From: Obrimoposthia wandeli
Lineage: Eukaryota
Length of the DNA stretch: 64,000 nt
Direction: 5' to 3'
NCBI GenBank assembly: GCA_977020255.1
Contig: CDROCS010000122.1
Span: forward strand, 186,001 to 250,000
Of this stretch, positions 10,128-48,038 are shown in pieces. Under the pieces are notes generated by a model, which did not search any database, was not told where the DNA came from, and saw only the letters and a program-made list of their open reading frames with translations. The position numbers and the translations under genes were made by a program. Numbering within the stretch: the first letter of the stretch is position 1; each line of letters opens with the position of its first letter.

Positions 10128-11264
10128 ATGAAAAAAAATACAATTAGGTGCTTAAGTAGCTTGTGTTTACTAATGGCATTTCAAGCGAATGCCGCTTGGT
10201 TAGAAGTAACAGGGAAAGCCCCTATCCTAGAAAGCGACAGTACCGCGCGTATCAACGCATTGGAAGATGCTACCTATCAAGCCATGCTGTATTCCGGTGC
10301 CGACATTGCCAGCTTTAATCACATAAAACCTTATTTCGCGACTGAAAAAGAAGAATACCAATTCAGTGGTAATTCAATTCGCCATGTCATGGTATTAAAG
10401 CAGAAGAAAAAAAGCGGCAATATGTACGTTACGGCACGTATTGATGTGTATCCATCGGCAAATAGTTGCCACAAAAATCAATACAAGAAAGGAATACTGT
10501 TAGGTGAGTTTGACCTAATATCACCACAACATGCTTCTATGGGCAGTATTTATCAGATTGGTGATGATTTCACATCTTTATTACAACGCCAAATCCAAAG
10601 GAAATCACAAAGCTTTGTCGTATCAGGTATTACCCAAGTGCCCATACGCCCAGGGCAACCAACGGTAATGACGATGTTAGCGGAAGACAACGACGCACAA
10701 TATATAGTAAATGGACAAATTACCGATCTTACCTCGACACTCGATCAAAAATTCATTAAAGATGATCAAGTCAACCGGCAGTTTGCAGCGACGTTGCAGG
10801 TTATGGATGGTAAAACGGGGGATATTTTATTCCAAAATAACTATCGAGAGATTGCTGAATGGCCTTTTGCCAAAACCAGTCAGGTAGACACGAAAAGTGC
10901 TCGCTTTTGGCAATCAACTTATGGTAAAGCCGTACAACGTATAAGTCGTAACATGATGCTTGATCTTGAAACAGCACTGTCTTGTCGAACCAGCCTACCT
11001 GAAGTTGTTAATGTTCATAATAATACAGTGCAGATCAATGCTGGCCGTATTCATGGTGTTAACCGTGGTGACCAGCTTCAACTATGGCATAGTGCTGGGT
11101 TCATTGATCCAATGGGCATTGCTCGAAATCGTATGATACAAACTGACATCACATTAACGGTTGAACGTATCTACGAGAAATCAACAGAACTGTCTGTTGA
11201 CCAAGCAAATCTCGCAAACAGCATTCAACCTGGTGATTTACTGACCAAGCAAGTCGACCGATAA
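10128..11264 (+). CDS. flgT: H-ring/T-ring assembly protein FlgT
   Basis: Signal peptide; ARINALEDA; INAGRIHGVNRGD; divergent from flgO. Confidence 0.92.
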   Translation: MKKNTIRCLSSLCLLMAFQANAAWLEVTGKAPILESDSTARINALEDATYQAMLYSGADIASFNHIKPYFATEKEEYQFSGNSIRHVMVLKQKKKSGNMYVTARIDVYPSANSCHKNQYKKGILLGEFDLISPQHASMGSIYQIGDDFTSLLQRQIQRKSQSFVVSGITQVPIRPGQPTVMTMLAEDNDAQYIVNGQITDLTSTLDQKFIKDDQVNRQFAATLQVMDGKTGDILFQNNYREIAEWPFAKTSQVDTKSARFWQSTYGKAVQRISRNMMLDLETALSCRTSLPEVVNVHNNTVQINAGRIHGVNRGDQLQLWHSAGFIDPMGIARNRMIQTDITLTVERIYEKSTELSVDQANLANSIQPGDLLTKQVDR

Positions 11265-11313
11265 CACTAATTACTTAAAAAGTTGAAGAATATGAGTATA
11301 ATGGTGGCCAAGT

Positions 11314-11390
11314 GCCCCCTTAGCTCAGCTGGATAGAGCGTCCCCCTCCTAAGGGGAAGGCCACAAGTTCGACTCTTGTAGGGGGCACCA
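11314..11390 (+). tRNA. tRNA-Arg(CCU)
   Basis: 77-nt cloverleaf, acceptor GCCCCCT/AGGGGGC, anticodon loop CTCCTAA, TTCGA, encoded CCA. Confidence 0.96.
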
Positions 11391-11398
11391 CAAATTTT

Positions 11399-11432
11399 AA
11401 AGGCTTAGCAATTTACGTTGCTAAGCCTTTTT
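11399..11432 (+). terminator. Terminator after tRNA-Arg
   Basis: AAAGGCTTAGCAA-N6-TTGCTAAGCCTTT followed by TT. Confidence 0.85.
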
Positions 11433-11558
11433 CATTTAATCTTATGGTGAGTTAAAAGAATACTTTCAACTTATACCAATCTAAACAAGTTTCTGACCAT
11501 TTACTTACCACAATGGTATTCGTTGGCATTAATGCTTTATTTCTCAAAATGTAGATAC

Positions 11559-11597
11559 AAAAAAACCTCGTTGAAGTATTTATCTTCAACGAGGTTT
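11559..11597 (-). terminator. Terminator after tRNA-Ala
   Basis: AAACCTCGTTGAAG / CTTCAACGAGGTTT stem with T-run on minus strand. Confidence 0.8.
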
Positions 11598-11649
11598 ATT
11601 GTTTTCATGCTTATCTATTCTCTCAATTATAAAAAATAGATAATTAATT

Positions 11650-11725
11650 TGGTGGAGCTATGCGGGATCGAACCGCAGACCTCTTCGCTGCCAGCGAAGC
11701 GCTCTCCCAGCTGAGCTATAGCCCC
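11650..11725 (-). tRNA. tRNA-Ala(GGC)
   Basis: GGGGCTATAGCTCAGCTGGGAGAGCG-CTTCG-CTGGCAG-CGAAG...TTCGATCC...CCA, 76 nt. Confidence 0.97.
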
Positions 11726-11873
11726 AAATTGTTTACCAATCATAAAAACTTAATCATTTCATGTCAATATGATCAATCTAAGAACCAAATATAGAATCAA
11801 ATTTTGTGAATCTGATCAAAAAAAGGGAGAGGCTAACCCTCTTCCTTCAAATTAACGTTTAACAACACAATAA

Positions 11874-13298
11874 TTATGCGTTTGCTTCACGTTCCGCAAT
11901 GAATGCCAGTGCCATCGTAATACGATTAACAACACGATCTTTACCAATCAGCATCATGGTTGCATCAACCGAAGGCGATTGGCCTTGACCGGTAACTGCA
12001 ACACGTAAAGGCATACCGACTTTACCCATACCGACTTCAAGCTCAGTACATGTGTCTGCAATCACTGTATGCAAGCTTTCAGTATTCCACTCTTCAAGCG
12101 CTTCTACTTTCGATAACACTAAAGCTAAAGCATCTTTTGCAACTGGGCGTAAATGTTTCTTCGCAGCACCGGCTTCAAACTCGCTAAAGTCTTGGTAGAA
12201 GTAACGAGATTGCTCAGCAAGTTCGATTAACGTATTACACCGCTCGCCGACTAAGCCAATGACATCGGTAATTTTAGGGCCATTTGCTGTATCAATTTCT
12301 TTTTGATCAAGGTGCCATTGCAGGTATTTCGCAACATACTCAGGTTCGGCAGTCTTGATGTAGTGGTTATTCAACCACAGTAGCTTATCTGTATTGAATG
12401 CAGACGCTGATTTACTGATTGATTCAAGGCTGAATAAGTTAATCATCTCTTCCATAGAAAAGATCTCTTGATCACCATGAGACCAGCCTAAACGGATCAG
12501 GTAATTGAGTAATGCTTGAGGTAAATAACCTTCATCACGGTATTGCATCACGCTAACCGCACCATGGCGCTTAGACAATTTAGCGCCATCATCACCCAGA
12601 ATCATTGCACAGTGTGCGAATTCTGGTACTGGTGCACCTAATGCTTCATAAATATTGATCTGACGAGGGGTATTGTTAATGTGATCTTCACCACGAACAA
12701 CCTGAGTAATACCCATATCCCAATCATCAATTACAACACAGAAGTTATATGTTGGGCTGCCATCAGTACGACGAATAATCAGATCATCAAGCTCGCTATT
12801 CGCAATTTCGATGCGACCACGTACTTTATCTTCAAATACAACCGTCCCTTCTTTCGGGTTACGGAATCGAATACAGAATGCGCTATCTTCTGTTGCAGCT
12901 GCATTTACCGCTACAATTTTTGGATGGTTAGCATCGTAACGAGGCTTAACACCCGCAGCCATTTGCTCTTCACGCAGTTCGTCTAGTAGCTCTTTCGGGC
13001 AATAGCACTTATACGCTTTATCTTCAGCTAATAGTTGATCGACCAACTGGTTATAACGATCAAAACGCTTAGTCTGGTAGTAAGGACCTTCATCCCAATC
13101 CATTCCTAGCCATTCCATGCCTTCAAGAATGGCATCGATCGCTTCTTGTGTAGAGCGTTCAAGGTCAGTATCTTCGATACGAAGTACAAATTCGCCACCC
13201 ATGTGCTTAGCAAATAACCATGAATACAGCGCTGTACGAGCACCACCTACGTGCAGAAAGCCTGTTGGGCTTGGTGCAAAGCGAGTTTTAACCGTCAT
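11874..13298 (-). CDS. gltX: Glutamate--tRNA ligase
   Basis: [14 protein letters not shown] (HIGH motif) and KLSKR. Confidence 0.98.
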
Positions 13299-13432: not shown

Positions 13433-13825
13433 TCAACCCGGTGGACCTTTAGGATACATGTAAGTATCAAATCCACGATTCCATTCATAACGAAATTGTG
13501 GTTCATCCCGTCGCCCTTTACATTGGTCTTGGTATCTTAACCCTTTAACGCCATAACCAAACGCCTTGTTCACATCGCAAAATGTGTTAATACCGTCTTC
13601 ATAGCCCGCTTGATATTGCTGGTAACTTTCTTGCTCTAGCTTATCAACCTGATACGCTTTGGTTAATTCCGCTTCGGTCTGCATTACTTGGCCTTGTATG
13701 GCATTTTTTTCACCGATCTCAGACCACCGAGGTGAAGATGTAGATGTGTACTGAGCAGCGCAGCCACTGATAATCAGCGAGAAAATGACAATAAACGCGT
13801 TAGTTACGATATAAAACTTCGTCAT
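13433..13825 (-). CDS. Lipoprotein, DUF2799/YfiL-like
   Basis: Lipobox ISGC; YQAGYEDGINTFC and AFGYGVKG...C pattern. Confidence 0.7.
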   Translation of the reverse strand: MTKFYIVTNAFIVIFSLIISGCAAQYTSTSSPRWSEIGEKNAIQGQVMQTEAELTKAYQVDKLEQESYQQYQAGYEDGINTFCDVNKAFGYGVKGLRYQDQCKGRRDEPQFRYEWNRGFDTYMYPKGPPG

Positions 13826-13863: not shown

Positions 13864-13894
13864 TTAATTAGGAAGCCATCGACCTCCTAATTAA
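13864..13894 (-). terminator. Hairpin after small peptide gene 1
   Basis: TTAATTAGGA-N11-TCCTAATTAA. Confidence 0.55.
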
Positions 13895-13908
13895 AGTAAC
13901 AAACTGGT

Positions 13909-14097
13909 TCAATAATGTGTTTTACCACCCTTTTGAGCACAGATTGTTTGAGGAACCCAACTCTCAACCGTTTGACCACTTTCCGTAGTCACCACACATC
14001 GATAGATAGGCATTGCTCCAACACCGCCAGATTGCGCAGCGAAAACAGGCACCGAAGACACAATAAATAATGTTATTGCAGTAAGAATATGTTTCAT
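13909..14097 (-). CDS. Small secreted two-cysteine peptide (copy 1)
   Basis: AAGGT RBS, Sec signal ending VFA, paralogous to 16398-16598, flanked by hairpins. Confidence 0.75.
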   Translation of the reverse strand: MKHILTAITLFIVSSVPVFAAQSGGVGAMPIYRCVVTTESGQTVESWVPQTICAQKGGKTHY

Positions 14098-14109
14098 AAG
14101 CTACCTTTT

Positions 14110-14125
14110 TTTGATATTCATCACA
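14110..14125. promoter_or_regulatory. CRP/FNR-like site next to RBS of peptide 1
   Basis: TTTGA-TATTCA-TCACA, 12 bp from the ATG. Confidence 0.55.
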
Positions 14126-14210
14126 AAAATTCTAGCTTAGTTTTTTATAAACTCCATGCAAATAAACATATTTTAAATATTGAATCAGAAATACCAGCTT
14201 CCGTATAAAC

Positions 14211-14237
14211 AACAAAACCGGGTTACAAGAACCCGGC
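14211..14237 (-). terminator. Terminator after porin 1
   Basis: CCGGGTT-N5-AACCCGG followed by TTTTGTT on minus strand. Confidence 0.8.
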
Positions 14238-14256
14238 CATTATTATAAGACGCTGA

Positions 14257-15648
14257 TTATTTCACTGTGAATGGAATAGTCAATGTTACTTTCAAATCAG
14301 TCTCATCTTGGAATGCGTTCGAGTACGGTGCCCAGTTTCCAGCATTTGAGTCGTTAACATAGTATGTGTAGTACATACCAAAATTAGCCCCTTTCAGTGC
14401 ACCGCCTTGAATAGCATAATTTAAGAAAGCACTACCTGAGTATTCAACTAGTTCATCAATACCCGCTTGATCAGACTTAGCACCAAATGCATATACACCA
14501 TTCACACCAGCACTAAAGCCTTGTGCACCTAAGTCAGAGAAGTCACGCGCAACAGAACCGAAGACACCTAGCTCACCATCATGGTTAAAGTCAGAACGGT
14601 TATTCCACCAAATATCGTAAGCACCGTTTGAACCACCATAAACTTCAGTCAGGCGGTAAGCCATGTTACCCACGTTGCCACGAGTATCGCTTGAATCTGC
14701 CGCAGTATATGTCGCTTCAGCACGTACAGAGTACTGGCCGTAAGACTTAGCTGAAATGAATGCTAGCTGGTAAGCCGTTGAGTCGTATTGGTTATCATCA
14801 TCAACAACATAAACTTGTGGAGAAAGGTACCAACCATCAGCCGTTGTGTACTTCACTTTAATGTGAGCATTTTTACGATCGCCATCTGATAACGCTGCAT
14901 AAGCGGCATCTAACAGCAGTCCATTATCAAACGTATAACGACCACCTAATGAGTAAGCAGTGCCTGCATCTTCAGCATCTGAACCGCTTCCAGTACGGAA
15001 CTCATAGCTATCTTTGAACCAAGGTGCGCGATATTCATCAGCAACAACAAGACCTAATGCTAGGTTACCTACATTTGCGCCAATTTCACCACCAGTATAC
15101 GTACCAGCAGCGAAAGACCAGTTAACGCCCATCGCTGTCGGTACAGATGGTTGGAAGTAACCTAATTTAGCAGTTACTGCATCGCCAAATTTAAATTTGA
15201 ATGCAGCAGTCTGAAATGCTCCACCATTGTCGTTACAGCTTGTATCCCATGCACTATCACAACCACTTCTGCTGGTTGGTTCCATGTCATATGGGTTATT
15301 CACGCCCCAGAAGTTCATTTCATGATCAGGAGAAGCGTTTTGCCACAAATCAAACGTTGAATAAACGTTAAGATCTAAACCAACAGTATCAGCTACATAG
15401 CCCGAGTTAAAATCAACAGATAGATACATTGAACCGTGATCTAAATTCGGTGTTTTTGATGTGTCGTTACCATTCTCATCGACATCACCACGGGTACGAT
15501 CACGCATCCAAACATTGAGAGCGCCATTAATGGTTGAGTCTTCAATGAAGCCGCTTGCTTCAGCAGATGGCGCAACCGTTAGCGCCGAGCCAGCCACAAG
15601 ACCAACAACAAGTGTGCTAAGCATTGTACGTTTAAATATTTTTTCCAT
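14257..15648 (-). CDS. chiP: OprD-family outer-membrane porin, E. coli ChiP (YbfM)-like, copy 1
   Basis: GFIEDST start, DFNSGY, VNWSFAAGTYTG, YRAPW, SNGAYDIWWNNRSDFN, FQDETDLK; these match my recollection of E. coli ChiP motifs. Confidence 0.8.
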   Translation of the reverse strand: MEKIFKRTMLSTLVVGLVAGSALTVAPSAEASGFIEDSTINGALNVWMRDRTRGDVDENGNDTSKTPNLDHGSMYLSVDFNSGYVADTVGLDLNVYSTFDLWQNASPDHEMNFWGVNNPYDMEPTSRSGCDSAWDTSCNDNGGAFQTAAFKFKFGDAVTAKLGYFQPSVPTAMGVNWSFAAGTYTGGEIGANVGNLALGLVVADEYRAPWFKDSYEFRTGSGSDAEDAGTAYSLGGRYTFDNGLLLDAAYAALSDGDRKNAHIKVKYTTADGWYLSPQVYVVDDDNQYDSTAYQLAFISAKSYGQYSVRAEATYTAADSSDTRGNVGNMAYRLTEVYGGSNGAYDIWWNNRSDFNHDGELGVFGSVARDFSDLGAQGFSAGVNGVYAFGAKSDQAGIDELVEYSGSAFLNYAIQGGALKGANFGMYYTYYVNDSNAGNWAPYSNAFQDETDLKVTLTIPFTVK

Positions 15649-15669
15649 GGATAACTCCTAATAATAAAA

Positions 15670-15718
15670 TAGCTGTTTTTGTATACATCCTTAAGTTGGC
15701 CGCCGAAGGTCTGCATAC
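15670..15718 (-). promoter_or_regulatory. Conserved 5' leader RNA hairpin (copy 1)
   Basis: GUAUGCA-GA-CCUU[CGGCGGCCAACUU]AAGG-A-UGUAUAC then AAAAACAGCUA; same loop at 18243-18253. Confidence 0.75.
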
Positions 15719-15905
15719 AGGTTATTTATATAACGTTGTTTCAATAGGAGAAGAGGTTACAAGCTTTTTTCATTACAGAAAGTTAACGCAGAAGAATTTA
15801 TGACCGTGTTCAAATCGCATAAATACAAAAATACATTAAAAAAACAAAATCAACAACTTACAAGGAAAACATCAGAAAACATAAACGTTAAAACACTATA
15901 TTGAC

Positions 15906-15921
15906 TGTGAATCAACTCACA
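15906..15921. promoter_or_regulatory. CRP site upstream of porin 1
   Basis: Perfect TGTGA-ATCAAC-TCACA; weaker TATGA-N6-TCAAA at 15799-15814. Confidence 0.75.
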
Positions 15922-16362
15922 TAAAGCCAAATTTAGAAGGCCCAAAGTAGGCCCATCGCACGAGCACTTATAAATATACACTTTGTTTTATATTTATTGA
16001 GAGCGAAACAATGATCTACTTCGCAATTTGAAATAGACACATTGAACTAATTAGCCCGCACTTCTCTAAAATTGACGTTTTTACTTAACACATATTTAGC
16101 ATCAACAATTAAGCTGGATAAGCATTAAACATCGTCAAAAGGAATCCTGCGAATTCACATGCTTCTGATTTCCCTCAGATAACTATTATTGATAGATTGA
16201 ATAAACCATTTTGTTATCAATAGCATTAATAACCATAATTAATTTTATAGAAAGAAGTACGGAATTATAACGAACAAAAGATAGGGCTTAGATAGGAGTT
16301 ATTAAAATAAACATCTTAAGCATCAGGTTAGAACAAGTCATCGATTTAATTAAAGGCTTTAT

Positions 16363-16386
16363 AAAACCGGAGAGTCCGTTCTCCAG
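16363..16386 (-). terminator. Terminator after peptide 2
   Basis: Minus strand CTGGAGA-ACGGAC-TCTCCGG-TTTT. Confidence 0.75.
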
Positions 16387-16397
16387 CATTACACTAT

Positions 16398-16598
16398 TTA
16401 AAAATCAGCTGGATTTCCTTTCCCCCCCAGAGTTCGGCAATTAAACCAAGGTACAAAAATTGTTTCACCGGAAGGAAGTTTACAATATGTTTGGCCAAAC
16501 CCACCGCCATTACCGCCAGAAGAAGAAGCACTTGCAGGTGAAGATATTAGCAATACCATAAATAGACTTGAAGCTAGAAAAGTTAACTTGTTTTTCAT
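16398..16598 (-). CDS. Small secreted two-cysteine peptide (copy 2)
   Basis: GGGGG RBS, Sec signal ending ASA, paralogous to 13909-14097. Confidence 0.75.
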   Translation of the reverse strand: MKNKLTFLASSLFMVLLISSPASASSSGGNGGGFGQTYCKLPSGETIFVPWFNCRTLGGKGNPADF

Positions 16599-16614
16599 AT
16601 AACCCCCATAAGAA

Positions 16615-16630
16615 TGTGACTTTTGTCACG
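16615..16630. promoter_or_regulatory. CRP-like site next to RBS of peptide 2
   Basis: TGTGA-CTTTTG-TCACG, 16 bp from the ATG. Confidence 0.6.
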
Positions 16631-16731
16631 TTGAGTATAGGAGTTAATAATATACATGCCATTTTATAGAATTAATTTTCATCAAAAAATTATATACTTA
16701 ATTTACAGTTTCTTTTTTCAATACAAAATAA

Positions 16732-16757
16732 AAGTCAGCCTAAGATAAGGCTGACTT
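16732..16757 (-). terminator. Terminator after porin 2
   Basis: AAGTCAGCCT-N6-AGGCTGACTT then TTATTTT on minus strand. Confidence 0.8.
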
Positions 16758-16782
16758 AATTAAAATGCTGCTAACTAAATGA

Positions 16783-18198
16783 TTAGTTGAAGCTATAAGG
16801 AATAATTACCTGCAAGCGTAAATCAGTTTCATCTGCAGAGTTAGCCCCTGCATATTCATCACGCTCTAGCACTGTACCGTGTAAACGTACTGTTGAACCT
16901 TTTAATGCACCAGCCTGAAGAGAATATGCAACTGTTGCATTAAATGCATACTCGCTTTCATAATCCCAATCGCCCGTAGCTCCTTCAGCTGCAGATTTAC
17001 CACCCGTACCGTAACCAAAGCCTAGGTAGTAATTCCAACCATTACCTTGGTTGTAAGCAACACGGTTGTACCATGATAGTTGACCAGACTTGTTCCAATC
17101 AGATAGTGCATCCCACCATAGAGAGTAATTACCATTCGTCATACCGTAGGTATAAATCATACGAGGGTTAACATCAGCATCGTTATCACTTGATGCGTAA
17201 TTCACATCAGACATCCATGAAACTTTACCGAAGTTTGCATTAAATGACAGACCAGTTGTATAGCCAAGACCGTCATATTGATCATCATCATCTACACCGT
17301 AGAAATCATAAGCAATGGTCATAGTATCGTTAATGTTATAGCGTGCGTATACTTTATAGCCTGTCGTATCAACTTCTTCACGCTTGCCTGAAACAACGTT
17401 ATTATCCCAATCAACATTGGCATAACTAACATCAGTTGTTTGACCCAGACCAAACTGCAAGAATAAATCTTTCGTTGCATCAACCTGTAGACCTAGCGAG
17501 TGAGTGATACCCCAGCTTGTATCAGACCAAAGGGCTGGTGCGTAATCATCTTCACTTAATAACCATGGGGCTGTGTATTGATCAGCAATGAAATACGTCG
17601 CTTTCACTTTACCAAAGTTAGCATTCAATTCTGCACCACGGTATGTACCAGGAACAAAACTCCAAACATTACCAAGGGTACCGTTACCATTAGCCTGAAT
17701 CATACCGAAACGTGCATCAAAGTTTTCACCAGCTTTGAATTTTAACGCAGCCTTGTACAGCTTCAGCTGTTCACCTTCAGCTGAACCCCAATCAAGGTTA
17801 TTACAGGTTGAAATTTCATTACACAGGTACTCACCAGTATCACCATTTATCTGACTGTCGTTATATAGATCACCAGAGTAATAGCCGCCAATATCAGCAC
17901 CTAACCATCCGTCATGATAACCAGAAGTAAAGTCTAAAATGGCATTGTAAGAAGAGTAATTCAAACGGCTCCAAGTATCGCCATCCTCGCCACCAGGCTT
18001 ACCAGTAGTACGAGTACGAGCACGCGTATCAACAATAAAAGTACCATTCAAGGCTGAATCTGCCATGAACTCGTTGATAGCCTCAACGTATTGATCACCC
18101 GCTGCACTTTCTGTCGATGCCTGTACAGGCATCGCTACTACACCAAACATTGCAGCAGTTAAGGCTGAAACCTTAAATAAATTTGAACGATTTTCCAT
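16783..18198 (-). CDS. chiP: OprD-family outer-membrane porin, ChiP-like, copy 2 (divergent)
   Basis: DFTSGY, LYKAALKFK, NVWSFVPGTYRGAE, YTAPW, TNGNYSLWWDALSDWN, DETDLRL; C-terminal aromatic FN. Confidence 0.75.
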   Translation of the reverse strand: MENRSNLFKVSALTAAMFGVVAMPVQASTESAAGDQYVEAINEFMADSALNGTFIVDTRARTRTTGKPGGEDGDTWSRLNYSSYNAILDFTSGYHDGWLGADIGGYYSGDLYNDSQINGDTGEYLCNEISTCNNLDWGSAEGEQLKLYKAALKFKAGENFDARFGMIQANGNGTLGNVWSFVPGTYRGAELNANFGKVKATYFIADQYTAPWLLSEDDYAPALWSDTSWGITHSLGLQVDATKDLFLQFGLGQTTDVSYANVDWDNNVVSGKREEVDTTGYKVYARYNINDTMTIAYDFYGVDDDDQYDGLGYTTGLSFNANFGKVSWMSDVNYASSDNDADVNPRMIYTYGMTNGNYSLWWDALSDWNKSGQLSWYNRVAYNQGNGWNYYLGFGYGTGGKSAAEGATGDWDYESEYAFNATVAYSLQAGALKGSTVRLHGTVLERDEYAGANSADETDLRLQVIIPYSFN

Positions 18199-18218
18199 GG
18201 AATAACTCCTAAAAATAC

Positions 18219-18267
18219 TAGCTGTTTACTTGTGTCTTAAAGGTTGGCCGCCGAAGACATCAAGTAA
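18219..18267 (-). promoter_or_regulatory. Conserved 5' leader RNA hairpin (copy 2)
   Basis: UUACUUG-A-UGUCUU[CGGCGGCCAACCUUU]AAGACA-CAAGUAA then ACAGCUA. Confidence 0.75.
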
Positions 18268-18361
18268 CTCTCCTATATGTCAGCTCAATTATCTAAATCA
18301 AGCTAAATCATAATTTTTTAGTTCTTTATGAACTGCTGTGTTACTTCAGCTATAAGACTAC

Positions 18362-18374
18362 TTTCGCAGCGAAA
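18362..18374. promoter_or_regulatory. NagC/Mlc-like operator upstream of porin 2
   Basis: Palindrome TTTCGC-A-GCGAAA fits the TT-N9-AA pattern with a CG-rich centre. Confidence 0.4.
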
Positions 18375-18724
18375 AACATCAATAACAACTTAATTAATTG
18401 TGTGAAAAATATGACGCAGTGCAAATTTATTACACAACAGTGATCAAGTTCAAACTCTCTAGCAATAAGTTTATAAATAAATATTAAATCAAATAAAAAC
18501 AACACTTTAAATAAAAACAAAAAAGATTAAACGTGATGTAACACGAGAAAAAAAATGATTTTGTTTTTATTGGTATATGGATTTTTTAGATGTTTTAAAA
18601 ATAATTTTGAACTTTTTTAAGGAGAGAATAGTGAAAAAGAAGATAATTTGAATGGTATTAGGAAGTAAATATGAGGAAACACCTGCCTACCTTTCACAGA
18701 TAAGCAGGCTTTATCAAAACTTAA

Positions 18725-20785
<2,061 letters not shown>

Positions 20786-46781: not shown

Positions 46782-48038
46782 TTATGGCCGTATTAAGTAA
46801 TCAGCCTGACCTACCCACTTGTAACTTGTTAGCTCTTCTAAGCCCATAGGGCCACGTGCATGCAGCTTCTGAGTAGATACTGCAACCTCGGCACCTAAAC
46901 CAAACTGCGCACCGTCAGTAAAGCGTGTAGATGCATTCACATACACTGCAGCAGAGCCTGCCGCGTTGACGAAACGTTCTGCTGATTGAATATCGTTGGT
47001 AAGAATCGCATCAGAGTGGCTCGCGTTATGTTTACGCATGTGGGCAATCGCTTCTGCAACATCAGCAACCACTTTTACGCCTAACGTGAAACTTAACCAT
47101 TCAGTATCAAAATCACCGCTTGCAACATGACGCAATGTCGCCGCTTTTCCTTCAAGGAAAGAATATGCCGCATCATCAGCAACAAATTCAATGTTACTTC
47201 TATTTAAACGCTCTGCTAAACGAGGTAAAAAAGTCTCTGCCACTTTTTCGCTTACCAATAACGTATCCAATGCATTACACGCTGACGGGCGCTGTGCTTT
47301 GGCATTTTCAACCACATCAATTGAACGAGATATATCCGCAGAGTGATCAACATAAACATGGCTAATACCAAAGCCACCGATAATCACCGGAATCGTGCTG
47401 TTTTCTTTACACATTTTATGCAAACCAGCACCACCACGTGGAATAATCATATCAACGTACTGATCAAGGCGTAATAACTGTGATACTAACTCACGGTCCG
47501 GTTTGTCGATGTACTGAACCGATGCCGCGGGTAAATCTGCTTTTTTCAGTGCTACTTGAATCACTTTCACTAATTCCACATTGGAGTGAAAAGTTTCGCG
47601 TCCACCACGTAAAATACTGGCATTACCCGTTTTCAAACACAATGCAGCAATATCAATCGTTACATTTGGCCGAGCTTCATAGATAACACCAACAACGCCC
47701 AATGGCACACGACGACGGCTTAAACGCATGCCGTTTTCCAATACTCGACTATCGAGCTCTGCACCCACGGGATCATTTAAGCTGATCACGTTACGTACAT
47801 CATTGGCAATGCCGGTTAGCCTGTCTTCATTCAGTAAAAGACGATCAATCAATGCCTCTGTCATTCCTGATTCACGTGCGGCATTAATATCTTTAGCATT
47901 GGCCGCCAAAATCGCGTCTTTGTTTGCTTCTAGCTCATCGGCAATGATCGCTAATGCTTGGTTCTTTTGTGCTGTAGCTACTGTCGCTAATTCGAAAGCC
48001 GCTTCTTGAGCCGCTTTACCCATATGTTCAAGATTCAC
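46782..48038 (-). CDS. proA: Gamma-glutamyl phosphate reductase (GTG start)
   Basis: IYEARPNV; SACNALDT; [14 protein letters not shown]; AGAGGA RBS. Confidence 0.97.

Follow-up and report, generated by a model that had tools for sequence, protein, structure and literature searches.

A Photobacterium chitoporin locus with two vc0972-type leaders and a new family of predicted exported mini-proteins

Chitoporins (ChiP) fall into two classes, the monomeric OprD-type proteins, mostly enterobacterial, and the trimeric OmpC-type proteins typical of Vibrio (PMC13578368). In Vibrio cholerae, the small RNA (sRNA) MicX, which comes from the 3' untranslated region (UTR) of malG, represses the chitoporin gene vc0972 and the chitooligosaccharide-binding protein gene vc0620, and its action was reported to be independent of Hfq (PMC1976385). 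Chimeras of MicX with the VC0972 5' UTR were the most abundant of those listed in a ligation- and sequencing-based RNA interaction (RIL-seq) study of V. cholerae, with 104,380 reads (PMC9732341 supplement). One main chitoporin of Vibrio parahaemolyticus has been shown to be VP0802, a porin of the OprD-like kind (PMC11906056). A functional parallel is provided by the Escherichia coli chiP gene, which is controlled by the sRNA ChiX and by ChiZ, derived from its own 5' UTR; according to a recent preprint, ChiX is absent from Vibrio. The locus described here lies in positions 186,001 to 250,000 of contig CDROCS010000122.1 of the Obrimoposthia wandeli assembly GCA_977020255.1 (64,000 nucleotides [nt], referred to below as the window; coordinates are counted from its first letter, and the features lie on its minus strand unless indicated otherwise). 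It carries two genes for OprD-type porins, each preceded by a leader of the vc0972 type and followed by a gene for a small, predicted exported protein (peptides 1 and 2, behind porins 1 and 2, respectively).

The region represents the form that the Vibrionaceae chitoporin locus, which lies between ligA and gltX, takes in Photobacterium. Close relatives share its seven-gene order from ligA to gltX, and near-identical copies of the peptides bear the names Photobacterium profundum and P. frigidiphilum, which assigns the window to that clade. The initial annotation, made from the sequence alone, had described a six-part unit, occurring twice on the minus strand, that included CRP-like sites, a structured leader, a porin with its terminator, and a peptide gene that ends in a terminator or hairpin; all the parts it listed are present in both copies. 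Its suggestion that the system may be undescribed holds for the peptides, for which neither a description nor a family was found, but not for the leader, which is the known MicX-regulated 5' UTR of the vc0972 type. Porins and leader are of kinds already known; what is new here is the peptides.

The vc0972-MicX system of V. cholerae shares with the present locus the hairpin with the loop CGGCGGCCAAC, the ACAGCTA box, the start region, and the site beside ligA; MicX carries exact complements (see below). In V. cholerae, however, the porin is a trimeric OmpC-type protein followed by the gene for a DUF2057 protein, with no mini-protein gene, whereas the window encodes two OprD-type porins, each with its mini-protein. 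VP0802 belongs to the same family as the porins described here and is of the same size. The gltX-adjacent Vibrio genes, which are likely of the VP0802 type, encode proteins that are 64 to 74% identical to porin 1, but these leaderless genes, unlike those analyzed here, lack both the MicX leader and an accompanying mini-protein gene. In the chiPQ operon of E. coli and Salmonella, the gene for a monomeric ChiP homolog is likewise followed by a gene for a small exported protein, and an sRNA acts on the porin 5' UTR. The likeness, already drawn in the initial annotation, extends to the arrangement but not to the products: ChiQ is a cotranscribed lipoprotein that resembles neither the mini-proteins nor the DUF2799 lipoprotein encoded nearby (E value of 0.12 for the latter comparison), and the sRNA is ChiX rather than MicX. 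The peptides carry no lipobox, and terminators follow both porin genes, so that the organization is not that of a chiPQ-type operon.

Peptide 1 (13909-14097; 62 amino acids [aa]) is a predicted exported two-Cys mini-protein, and peptide 2 (16398-16598; 66 aa) consists of a Sec signal, a Gly-rich linker, and a two-Cys core, as delineated in the family alignment. The pairwise similarity of the two is weak (E value of 0.007), but both align with relatives that display invariant Cys, Pro, Cys, and Gly residues behind a Sec signal and a Gly-rich linker. Word-index protein searches returned only near-identical peptides, so that an exhaustive profile search was needed; run over 1.84 billion representative proteins, it recovered ∼20 clusters of small proteins. 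Large Ig/fn3 proteins that also appeared among its matches were rejected as spurious, the common feature being a "YxC" β-hairpin motif. A hidden Markov model (HMM) of the family found 77 matches, representing 61 distinct sequences, in the complete set of fetched loci. The ratio of nonsynonymous to synonymous substitution rates (dN/dS) was between 0.08 and 0.55 in all measurable pairs (0.13 to 0.54 for peptide 1 and 0.13 to 0.55 for peptide 2), which indicates that these 62- and 66-aa open reading frames (ORFs) are real genes. AlphaFold2 models built with the family alignment show the same confident core in both peptides, two strands and a short helix, with core pLDDT values (predicted scores of the local distance difference test) of 92 for peptide 1 and 92 to 94 for peptide 2. 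The models place Cys34 and Cys53 of peptide 1, and Cys39 and Cys54 of peptide 2, in positions to bridge the core, giving one predicted disulfide. The mature protein of about 40 residues probably folds as a disulfide-clamped β-hairpin with a short helix.

No Pfam or NCBIfam model fits the two peptides, and the source databases list family members as hypothetical proteins; none of 49 members had a significant match to any Pfam model. A few members carry the UniRef labels DUF1496 or DUF333. Proteins with these domains are also short, Sec exported, and cysteine containing, but the peptides match neither model significantly (best E value of 0.13, in 2 of the 49 members). In an hhalign comparison with the DUF1496 protein of pOXA-48, the match was confined to the signal peptide, and DUF333 yielded only weak echoes in feature-based and Foldseek searches. 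Foldseek searches of PDB and AFDB, together with Atlas searches by features and shape, detected no characterized analogue, and no description, family, or characterized member was found in the literature or the family databases. The peptides form a real, so far undescribed family based at the chitoporin locus.

Photobacterium, Enterovibrio, and many Vibrio species have members of the family at their ligA-gltX chitoporin locus. Locus maps show a common pattern of ligA, the leader, a porin of either class, a gene for a DUF2799 protein (with OprD-type porins) or a DUF2057 protein (with OmpC-type porins), and then one or two peptide genes; in Photobacterium and Enterovibrio, the peptide genes are codirectional with the porin gene and lie directly 3' of it. 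Co-occurrence was scored in 30 distinct loci that have the leader and no less than 3.5 kb of sequence downstream, and a peptide gene was present in 21 of them, beside porins of either class. When divergent cluster representatives were looked up, 7 of 8 mapped to the chitoporin locus. Moreover, peptide subtypes follow the two porin clades recognized in the phylogenetic tree (see below): codirectional peptides of the "FGQTYC type" lie 3' of clade A (porin 2) porins in 11 of 11 cases, and peptides of the "PIYRC type" lie 3' of clade B (porin 1) porins in 12 of 12, although the loci compared are interrelated and represent few independent events. The porin-peptide linkage looks to be under selection, in line with the selected functional pair proposed in the initial annotation.

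The overall explanation favored here, with a probability of approximately 0.65, is that chitoporins with MicX-type leaders are accompanied by separately transcribed mini-proteins that serve as accessories of uptake. Each porin gene would most likely be transcribed from a CRP-dependent promoter. The hairpin in its 5' UTR would display the loop, and the loop and the CAGCUA box would dock on two conserved segments of MicX; the docked MicX would repress translation and destabilize the porin mRNA, as has been shown for vc0972 in V. cholerae. The separate peptide gene behind each porin terminator would be expressed from a σ70-like −10 element with a CRP-like box over the likely transcription start. 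Judging by the linkage, the Sec-exported mini-protein would most likely assist chitooligosaccharide uptake as an accessory in the periplasm or at the outer membrane, acting on or beside the neighboring porin. The chitin that Vibrionaceae turn over makes up a major marine flux of carbon and nitrogen, in which entry through the outer membrane is a controlling step; a conserved unannotated family of mini-proteins could supply a part that is missing from the picture of chitooligosaccharide uptake or of the way uptake is controlled. In a more specific and less probable version, the mini-proteins would be dedicated, clade-matched partners of the chitoporins at the periplasmic mouth or in the lumen, involved in gating or in chitooligosaccharide handover; if true, they would constitute a new class of small proteins associated with porins, one common to two unrelated porin folds.

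Several observations weigh against this explanation. No peptide gene was found in 9 of the 30 leader-bearing loci, including those of V. cholerae and Aliivibrio, or in the leaderless gltX-adjacent OprD-type loci, where a relaxed motif scan was also negative; the same relaxed scan detected none in V. cholerae, Aliivibrio, or the relatives outside Vibrionaceae. Peptides and porins are not always equal in number, in Vibrio the peptide genes are convergent to the porin gene, and one family member (in locus L151) resides in an unrelated context. Both porins score far below the equivalog cutoff of 750 bits of the NCBIfam model for enterobacterial ChiP (260 bits for porin 1 and 146 bits for porin 2). 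Finally, a V. cholerae vc0972 fusion that spanned positions −402 to −26, hairpin included, was not regulated by MicX (PMC1976385), so that loop docking alone would be insufficient and sequences at the start site would also be required. Since Aliivibrio, V. cholerae, and the gltX-adjacent loci without a leader have no peptide, not every such porin needs one; throughout Vibrionaceae, the family resides facultatively at chitoporin loci.

Some of these irregularities would also suit peptides that are unrelated passengers of a hypervariable ligA-gltX islet. Such passengers might be antimicrobials, serve in competition, or affect the use of the porin by phages, and their proximity to the porins would reflect the position of the islet rather than a common role in the uptake of sugars. 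The locus is indeed very plastic: locus maps show replacement of porins by nonhomologous ones, variable copy numbers, and differing accessory genes. The peptide genes have their own promoter, occur in either orientation and without a 1:1 ratio to the porins, and are missing from the nine loci mentioned above; besides the member in L151, there is a possible one between malG and MicX (see below). Passenger status nevertheless appears unlikely, given that the family occurs almost only at the chitoporin locus, in several genera and with both porin classes, that the peptide subtype tracks the porin clade, and that no immunity or export genes typical of bacteriocins are found nearby. Should the mini-proteins turn out to be unrelated to uptake, the locus would still document an unusually plastic porin islet.

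The assignment of the porins is based on homology to the ChiP structures solved for E. coli and Serratia, with 7vu2 as the match in the PDB, and on a maximum-likelihood tree of 70 OprD-type porins taken from the fetched loci. Porin 1 (14257-15648; 463 aa) matches 7vu2 over its full length (residues 32 to 462; E value of 1e-57), reaches the Pfam OprD model, and is 71 to 77% identical to its orthologs in Vibrio and Psychromonas. Porin 2 (16783-18198; 471 aa), a paralog, also has a full-length match to 7vu2 (E value of 3e-36) but none to Pfam OprD. An AGF motif has been described at the mature N terminus of monomeric ChiPs (PMC13578368); porin 1 has A-S-G-F after its signal peptide, and no AGF-like motif is seen at the N terminus of porin 2. 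The two porins share 28% identity (E value of 9e-42) and belong to two deep, fully supported clades, A for porin 2 and B for porin 1, which makes the pair old, as the initial annotation had said, and not the product of a recent tandem duplication. Both are predicted to be OprD-type (monomeric, 18-strand) chitoporins of two deep paralogous lineages and are, by their model scores, relatives rather than equivalogs of the enterobacterial ChiP.

The chitooligosaccharide substrate is predicted, least surely for porin 2. It is conceivable, if rather unlikely, that one or both porins carry a different substrate and that the link to the chitin locus is only historical. The low identity between the two porins would be consistent with that, as would the features of porin 2, which has neither the Pfam OprD match nor the AGF-like motif and reaches only 146 of the 750 bits. 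However, the best structural relatives of both porins are ChiPs, their leader is common to the proven chitoporin gene vc0972, and MicX also targets the chitooligosaccharide-binding protein.

Intrinsic terminators lie directly 3' of the stop codons of both porin genes, at 16732-16757 for porin 2 (a 10-bp stem followed by a T-run) and at 14216-14238 for porin 1. Terminator-like sites are not more frequent in the region as a whole than in shuffled sequences, so that the argument here is one of position, not number. In front of most peptide genes there is a conserved AT-rich box, then a −10-like CCTATACT with a TGTGA-N6-TCACA-like box directly behind it, and finally a G-rich ribosome-binding site; of the two half-sites of the CRP-like box, the first is the better preserved one. 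A promoter scan placed the peptide 2 promoter at 16615-16662, with a −35-like ATGGCA, the −10 element TATACT (16639-16634), and a CRP-like box (16630-16615). The peptide 1 promoter region (14110-14134), read from the sequence, contains a −10-like TAGAAT (14134-14129) and a CRP-like box (14125-14110). Reading of the sequence also identified a terminator-like hairpin with a T-run after peptide 2 (16363-16386) and a 10-bp hairpin lacking a T-run after peptide 1 (13864-13894). Because they are located behind porin terminators and have promoters of their own, the peptide genes are predicted to be transcription units separate from the porins. The joint control by the leader that had been suggested for porin and peptide must be abandoned: the leader acts on the porins only, and in Vibrio the peptide genes even converge on the porin gene. 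The CRP-like box of the peptide genes would overlap the transcription start; if CRP binds there, repression would be the simplest reading.

CRP-like boxes with at least 8 of the 10 consensus matches were found in 49 of 75 regions upstream of leaders, compared to 10.2 in shuffled sequences, at conserved positions, and the box beside the ribosome-binding site of the peptide genes is in the same position in most relatives. In the window, the porin 2 leader is preceded by TTTGA-N6-TCACT (18439-18454; 8 of 10 matches), for which many lineages have counterparts ∼200 nt upstream of the loop. Upstream of the porin 1 leader there are two boxes, the full consensus TGTGA-N6-TCACA (15906-15921; 10 of 10, with 8 to 9 of 10 at the orthologous positions in relatives) and a second one (15799-15814; 8 of 10) whose position is conserved in porin 1-type loci. 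Small predicted exported proteins under independent, catabolite-type control, associated with the chitin locus whatever the porin fold, could also be periplasmic signals or regulators, with a modulating effect on the ChiS sensor or on its binding protein or with the task of informing the envelope stress machinery of the porin load. Such a role seems improbable, as the match between peptide subtype and porin clade better suits a physical partner than a common sensor and no sensor gene is linked to the peptides.

The leader hairpins map to 18226-18267 for porin 2 and to 15680-15719 for porin 1, with their loops at 18253-18243 and 15705-15695, respectively; they are supported by constrained folds, stem covariation, and complementarity to MicX. 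The 11-nt loop, invariant in this leader type, is identical in both leaders; the stems differ in sequence and both pair. On the 3' side, each hairpin is followed by the ACAGCTA box (18219-18225 and 15670-15676), a proposed second MicX contact that is nearly invariant in 48 leaders, and then by the start region TTAGGAGTTAT(T)CCATGGA. The Shine-Dalgarno sequence and start region of porin 2 occupy 18194-18212; their AGGAG and CCATGGA motifs are invariant before nonhomologous porins. Just 5' of the hairpin, an AGGAG/AGGAA box, either a second Shine-Dalgarno-like sequence or a GGA motif, is conserved in many lineages (18268-18276 in the window).

In a species-level genome scan, most Vibrionaceae loci had the exact leader motif, placed 56 to 74 nt upstream of the porin start. 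In metagenomes, a pattern scan made without assuming a porin yielded 102 stretches; every AT-rich, true match precedes a porin, and the GC-rich ones are chance matches inside unrelated genes. The same leader precedes two unrelated porin classes, OprD-type (about 450 to 470 aa) and OmpC-type (about 340 to 385 aa), and in P. profundum 3TCK and P. sagamiensis leader-bearing genes of both classes stand side by side. Two of the fetched loci (L119 and L140) contain the published sequence of the vc0972 reverse primer and have the same loop, boxes, and spacing as the leaders described here, which identifies the latter as the V. cholerae chiP (vc0972-type) leader. No Rfam family covers it, and a literature search with the loop sequence returned nothing relevant.

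In constrained single-sequence folds, all 58 distinct leaders, with 35 different 5' arms, formed a hairpin of at least 7 pairs around the loop. The mean fold energy was −10.75 kcal/mol for the native leaders and −3.62 kcal/mol when 5' and 3' arms were combined across lineages; with native folds so much more stable than arm-swapped ones, the covariation of the stem is clear. RNAalifold run on a MAFFT alignment overlooked the stem, as the 3' arms had been misaligned, and was replaced by the constrained folds and the arm swap.

MicX sequences came from genomes other than the present one, namely, from malG 3' regions on second replicons that are filed as plasmids, two of them from Vibrio and two from Photobacterium; they were reached in this way because a search with E. 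coli MalG listed no Vibrio protein. Rfam identified MicX in all four of these regions. The best-conserved stretch of MicX, UUGGCCGCCGA, is the exact complement, over 10 to 11 nt, of the leader loop (U)CGGCGGCCAA in each of 24 leader-MicX pairs (six leaders by four MicX sequences). In nearly all of these pairs, another MicX segment, (A)UAGCUG, complements the leader box CAGCUA(U) over 6 to 7 nt, 7 nt in most; for the porin 2 leader, the box contact is 6 nt long or absent among the top matches. Complementary runs of at least 10 nt arose in 2.4% of shuffled controls. These results come from exact-complement scans, which were used after duplex energies calculated with duplexfold over the whole lengths had proved uninformative.

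The predicted pairing joins, across genera, the invariant elements of two RNA families, the leader loop and the MicX stretch, so that the hairpin can be seen as a platform that would present a docking loop to MicX. Repression without Hfq, as reported for MicX, makes loop-loop pairing plausible. While the regulation of vc0972 by MicX is established in V. cholerae, the pairing model is derived from complementarity to the MicX of other genomes, and no description of such leader-MicX pairing was found in the texts that could be consulted. One MicX-docking leader that serves two unrelated chitoporin folds would add to the understanding of a regulation known since 2007 and gives it a testable pairing model. 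Recognition of the loop by a protein or small ligand, with the MicX match being secondary, would agree with the unresponsive hairpin-bearing fusion and with the lack of an Rfam family for the leader, but it is very improbable in view of a complementarity that falls, across genera, exactly on the invariant elements of the two RNA families, the abundant RIL-seq chimeras of MicX on the vc0972 5' UTR, and the Hfq independence expected of loop-loop pairing.

The 64-kb window contains no complement of the full loop apart from the leaders themselves; a 9-nt exact complement of the loop core (TTGGCCGCC) occurs at 47898-47908 on the plus strand, and chance alone would be expected to give one such match in this much sequence. 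In Vibrio sp. THAF191c (L160, 2091-2907), a partial MicX directly after malG is followed ∼600 nt later by a full MicX; an inserted stretch with an ORF separates the two, as if the sRNA gene region had received an insertion. In Photobacterium sp. DA100 (L158, 2304-2531, plus strand), a small ORF between malG and MicX encodes a signal peptide and a C...IP...C pattern and matches the peptide family HMM with an E value of 5e-7 (23.9 bits); it may be a family member placed beside the sRNA that controls chitoporins. In the annotation of E. coli K-12, the sRNA MalH is located at the 3' end of malG (L157, 2532-2634) and the sRNA ChiZ in the 5' UTR of chiP (L154, 1737-1834), positions that parallel those of MicX and of the leader studied here.

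The locus is flanked by ligA (18725-20755) and gltX (11874-13298). A gene for a DUF2799 lipoprotein (13433-13825; Pfam PF10973, E value of 5e-17) lies 3' of the porin 1 copy only; according to the locus maps, this gene is the usual direct 3' neighbor of OprD-type porin genes in Vibrio and Aliivibrio. Between ligA and gltX, some Photobacterium genomes (L043, 8555-10362; L035, 3355-5264) encode an OprD-type unit with a peptide together with an OmpC-type ChiP unit with a DUF2057 gene, both with the same leader, which amounts to nonhomologous porins being exchanged or added at one regulatory slot. On the other side of gltX, the gap between flgT and gltX (11264-11874) holds two tRNA genes, at 11314-11387 (plus strand) and 11653-11725 (minus strand). 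In a close relative (L001), the same interval contains, instead of the tRNAs, a 404-aa Porin_4/Porin_1 gene and a 164-aa ORF, so that the gltX-side flank is also variable.

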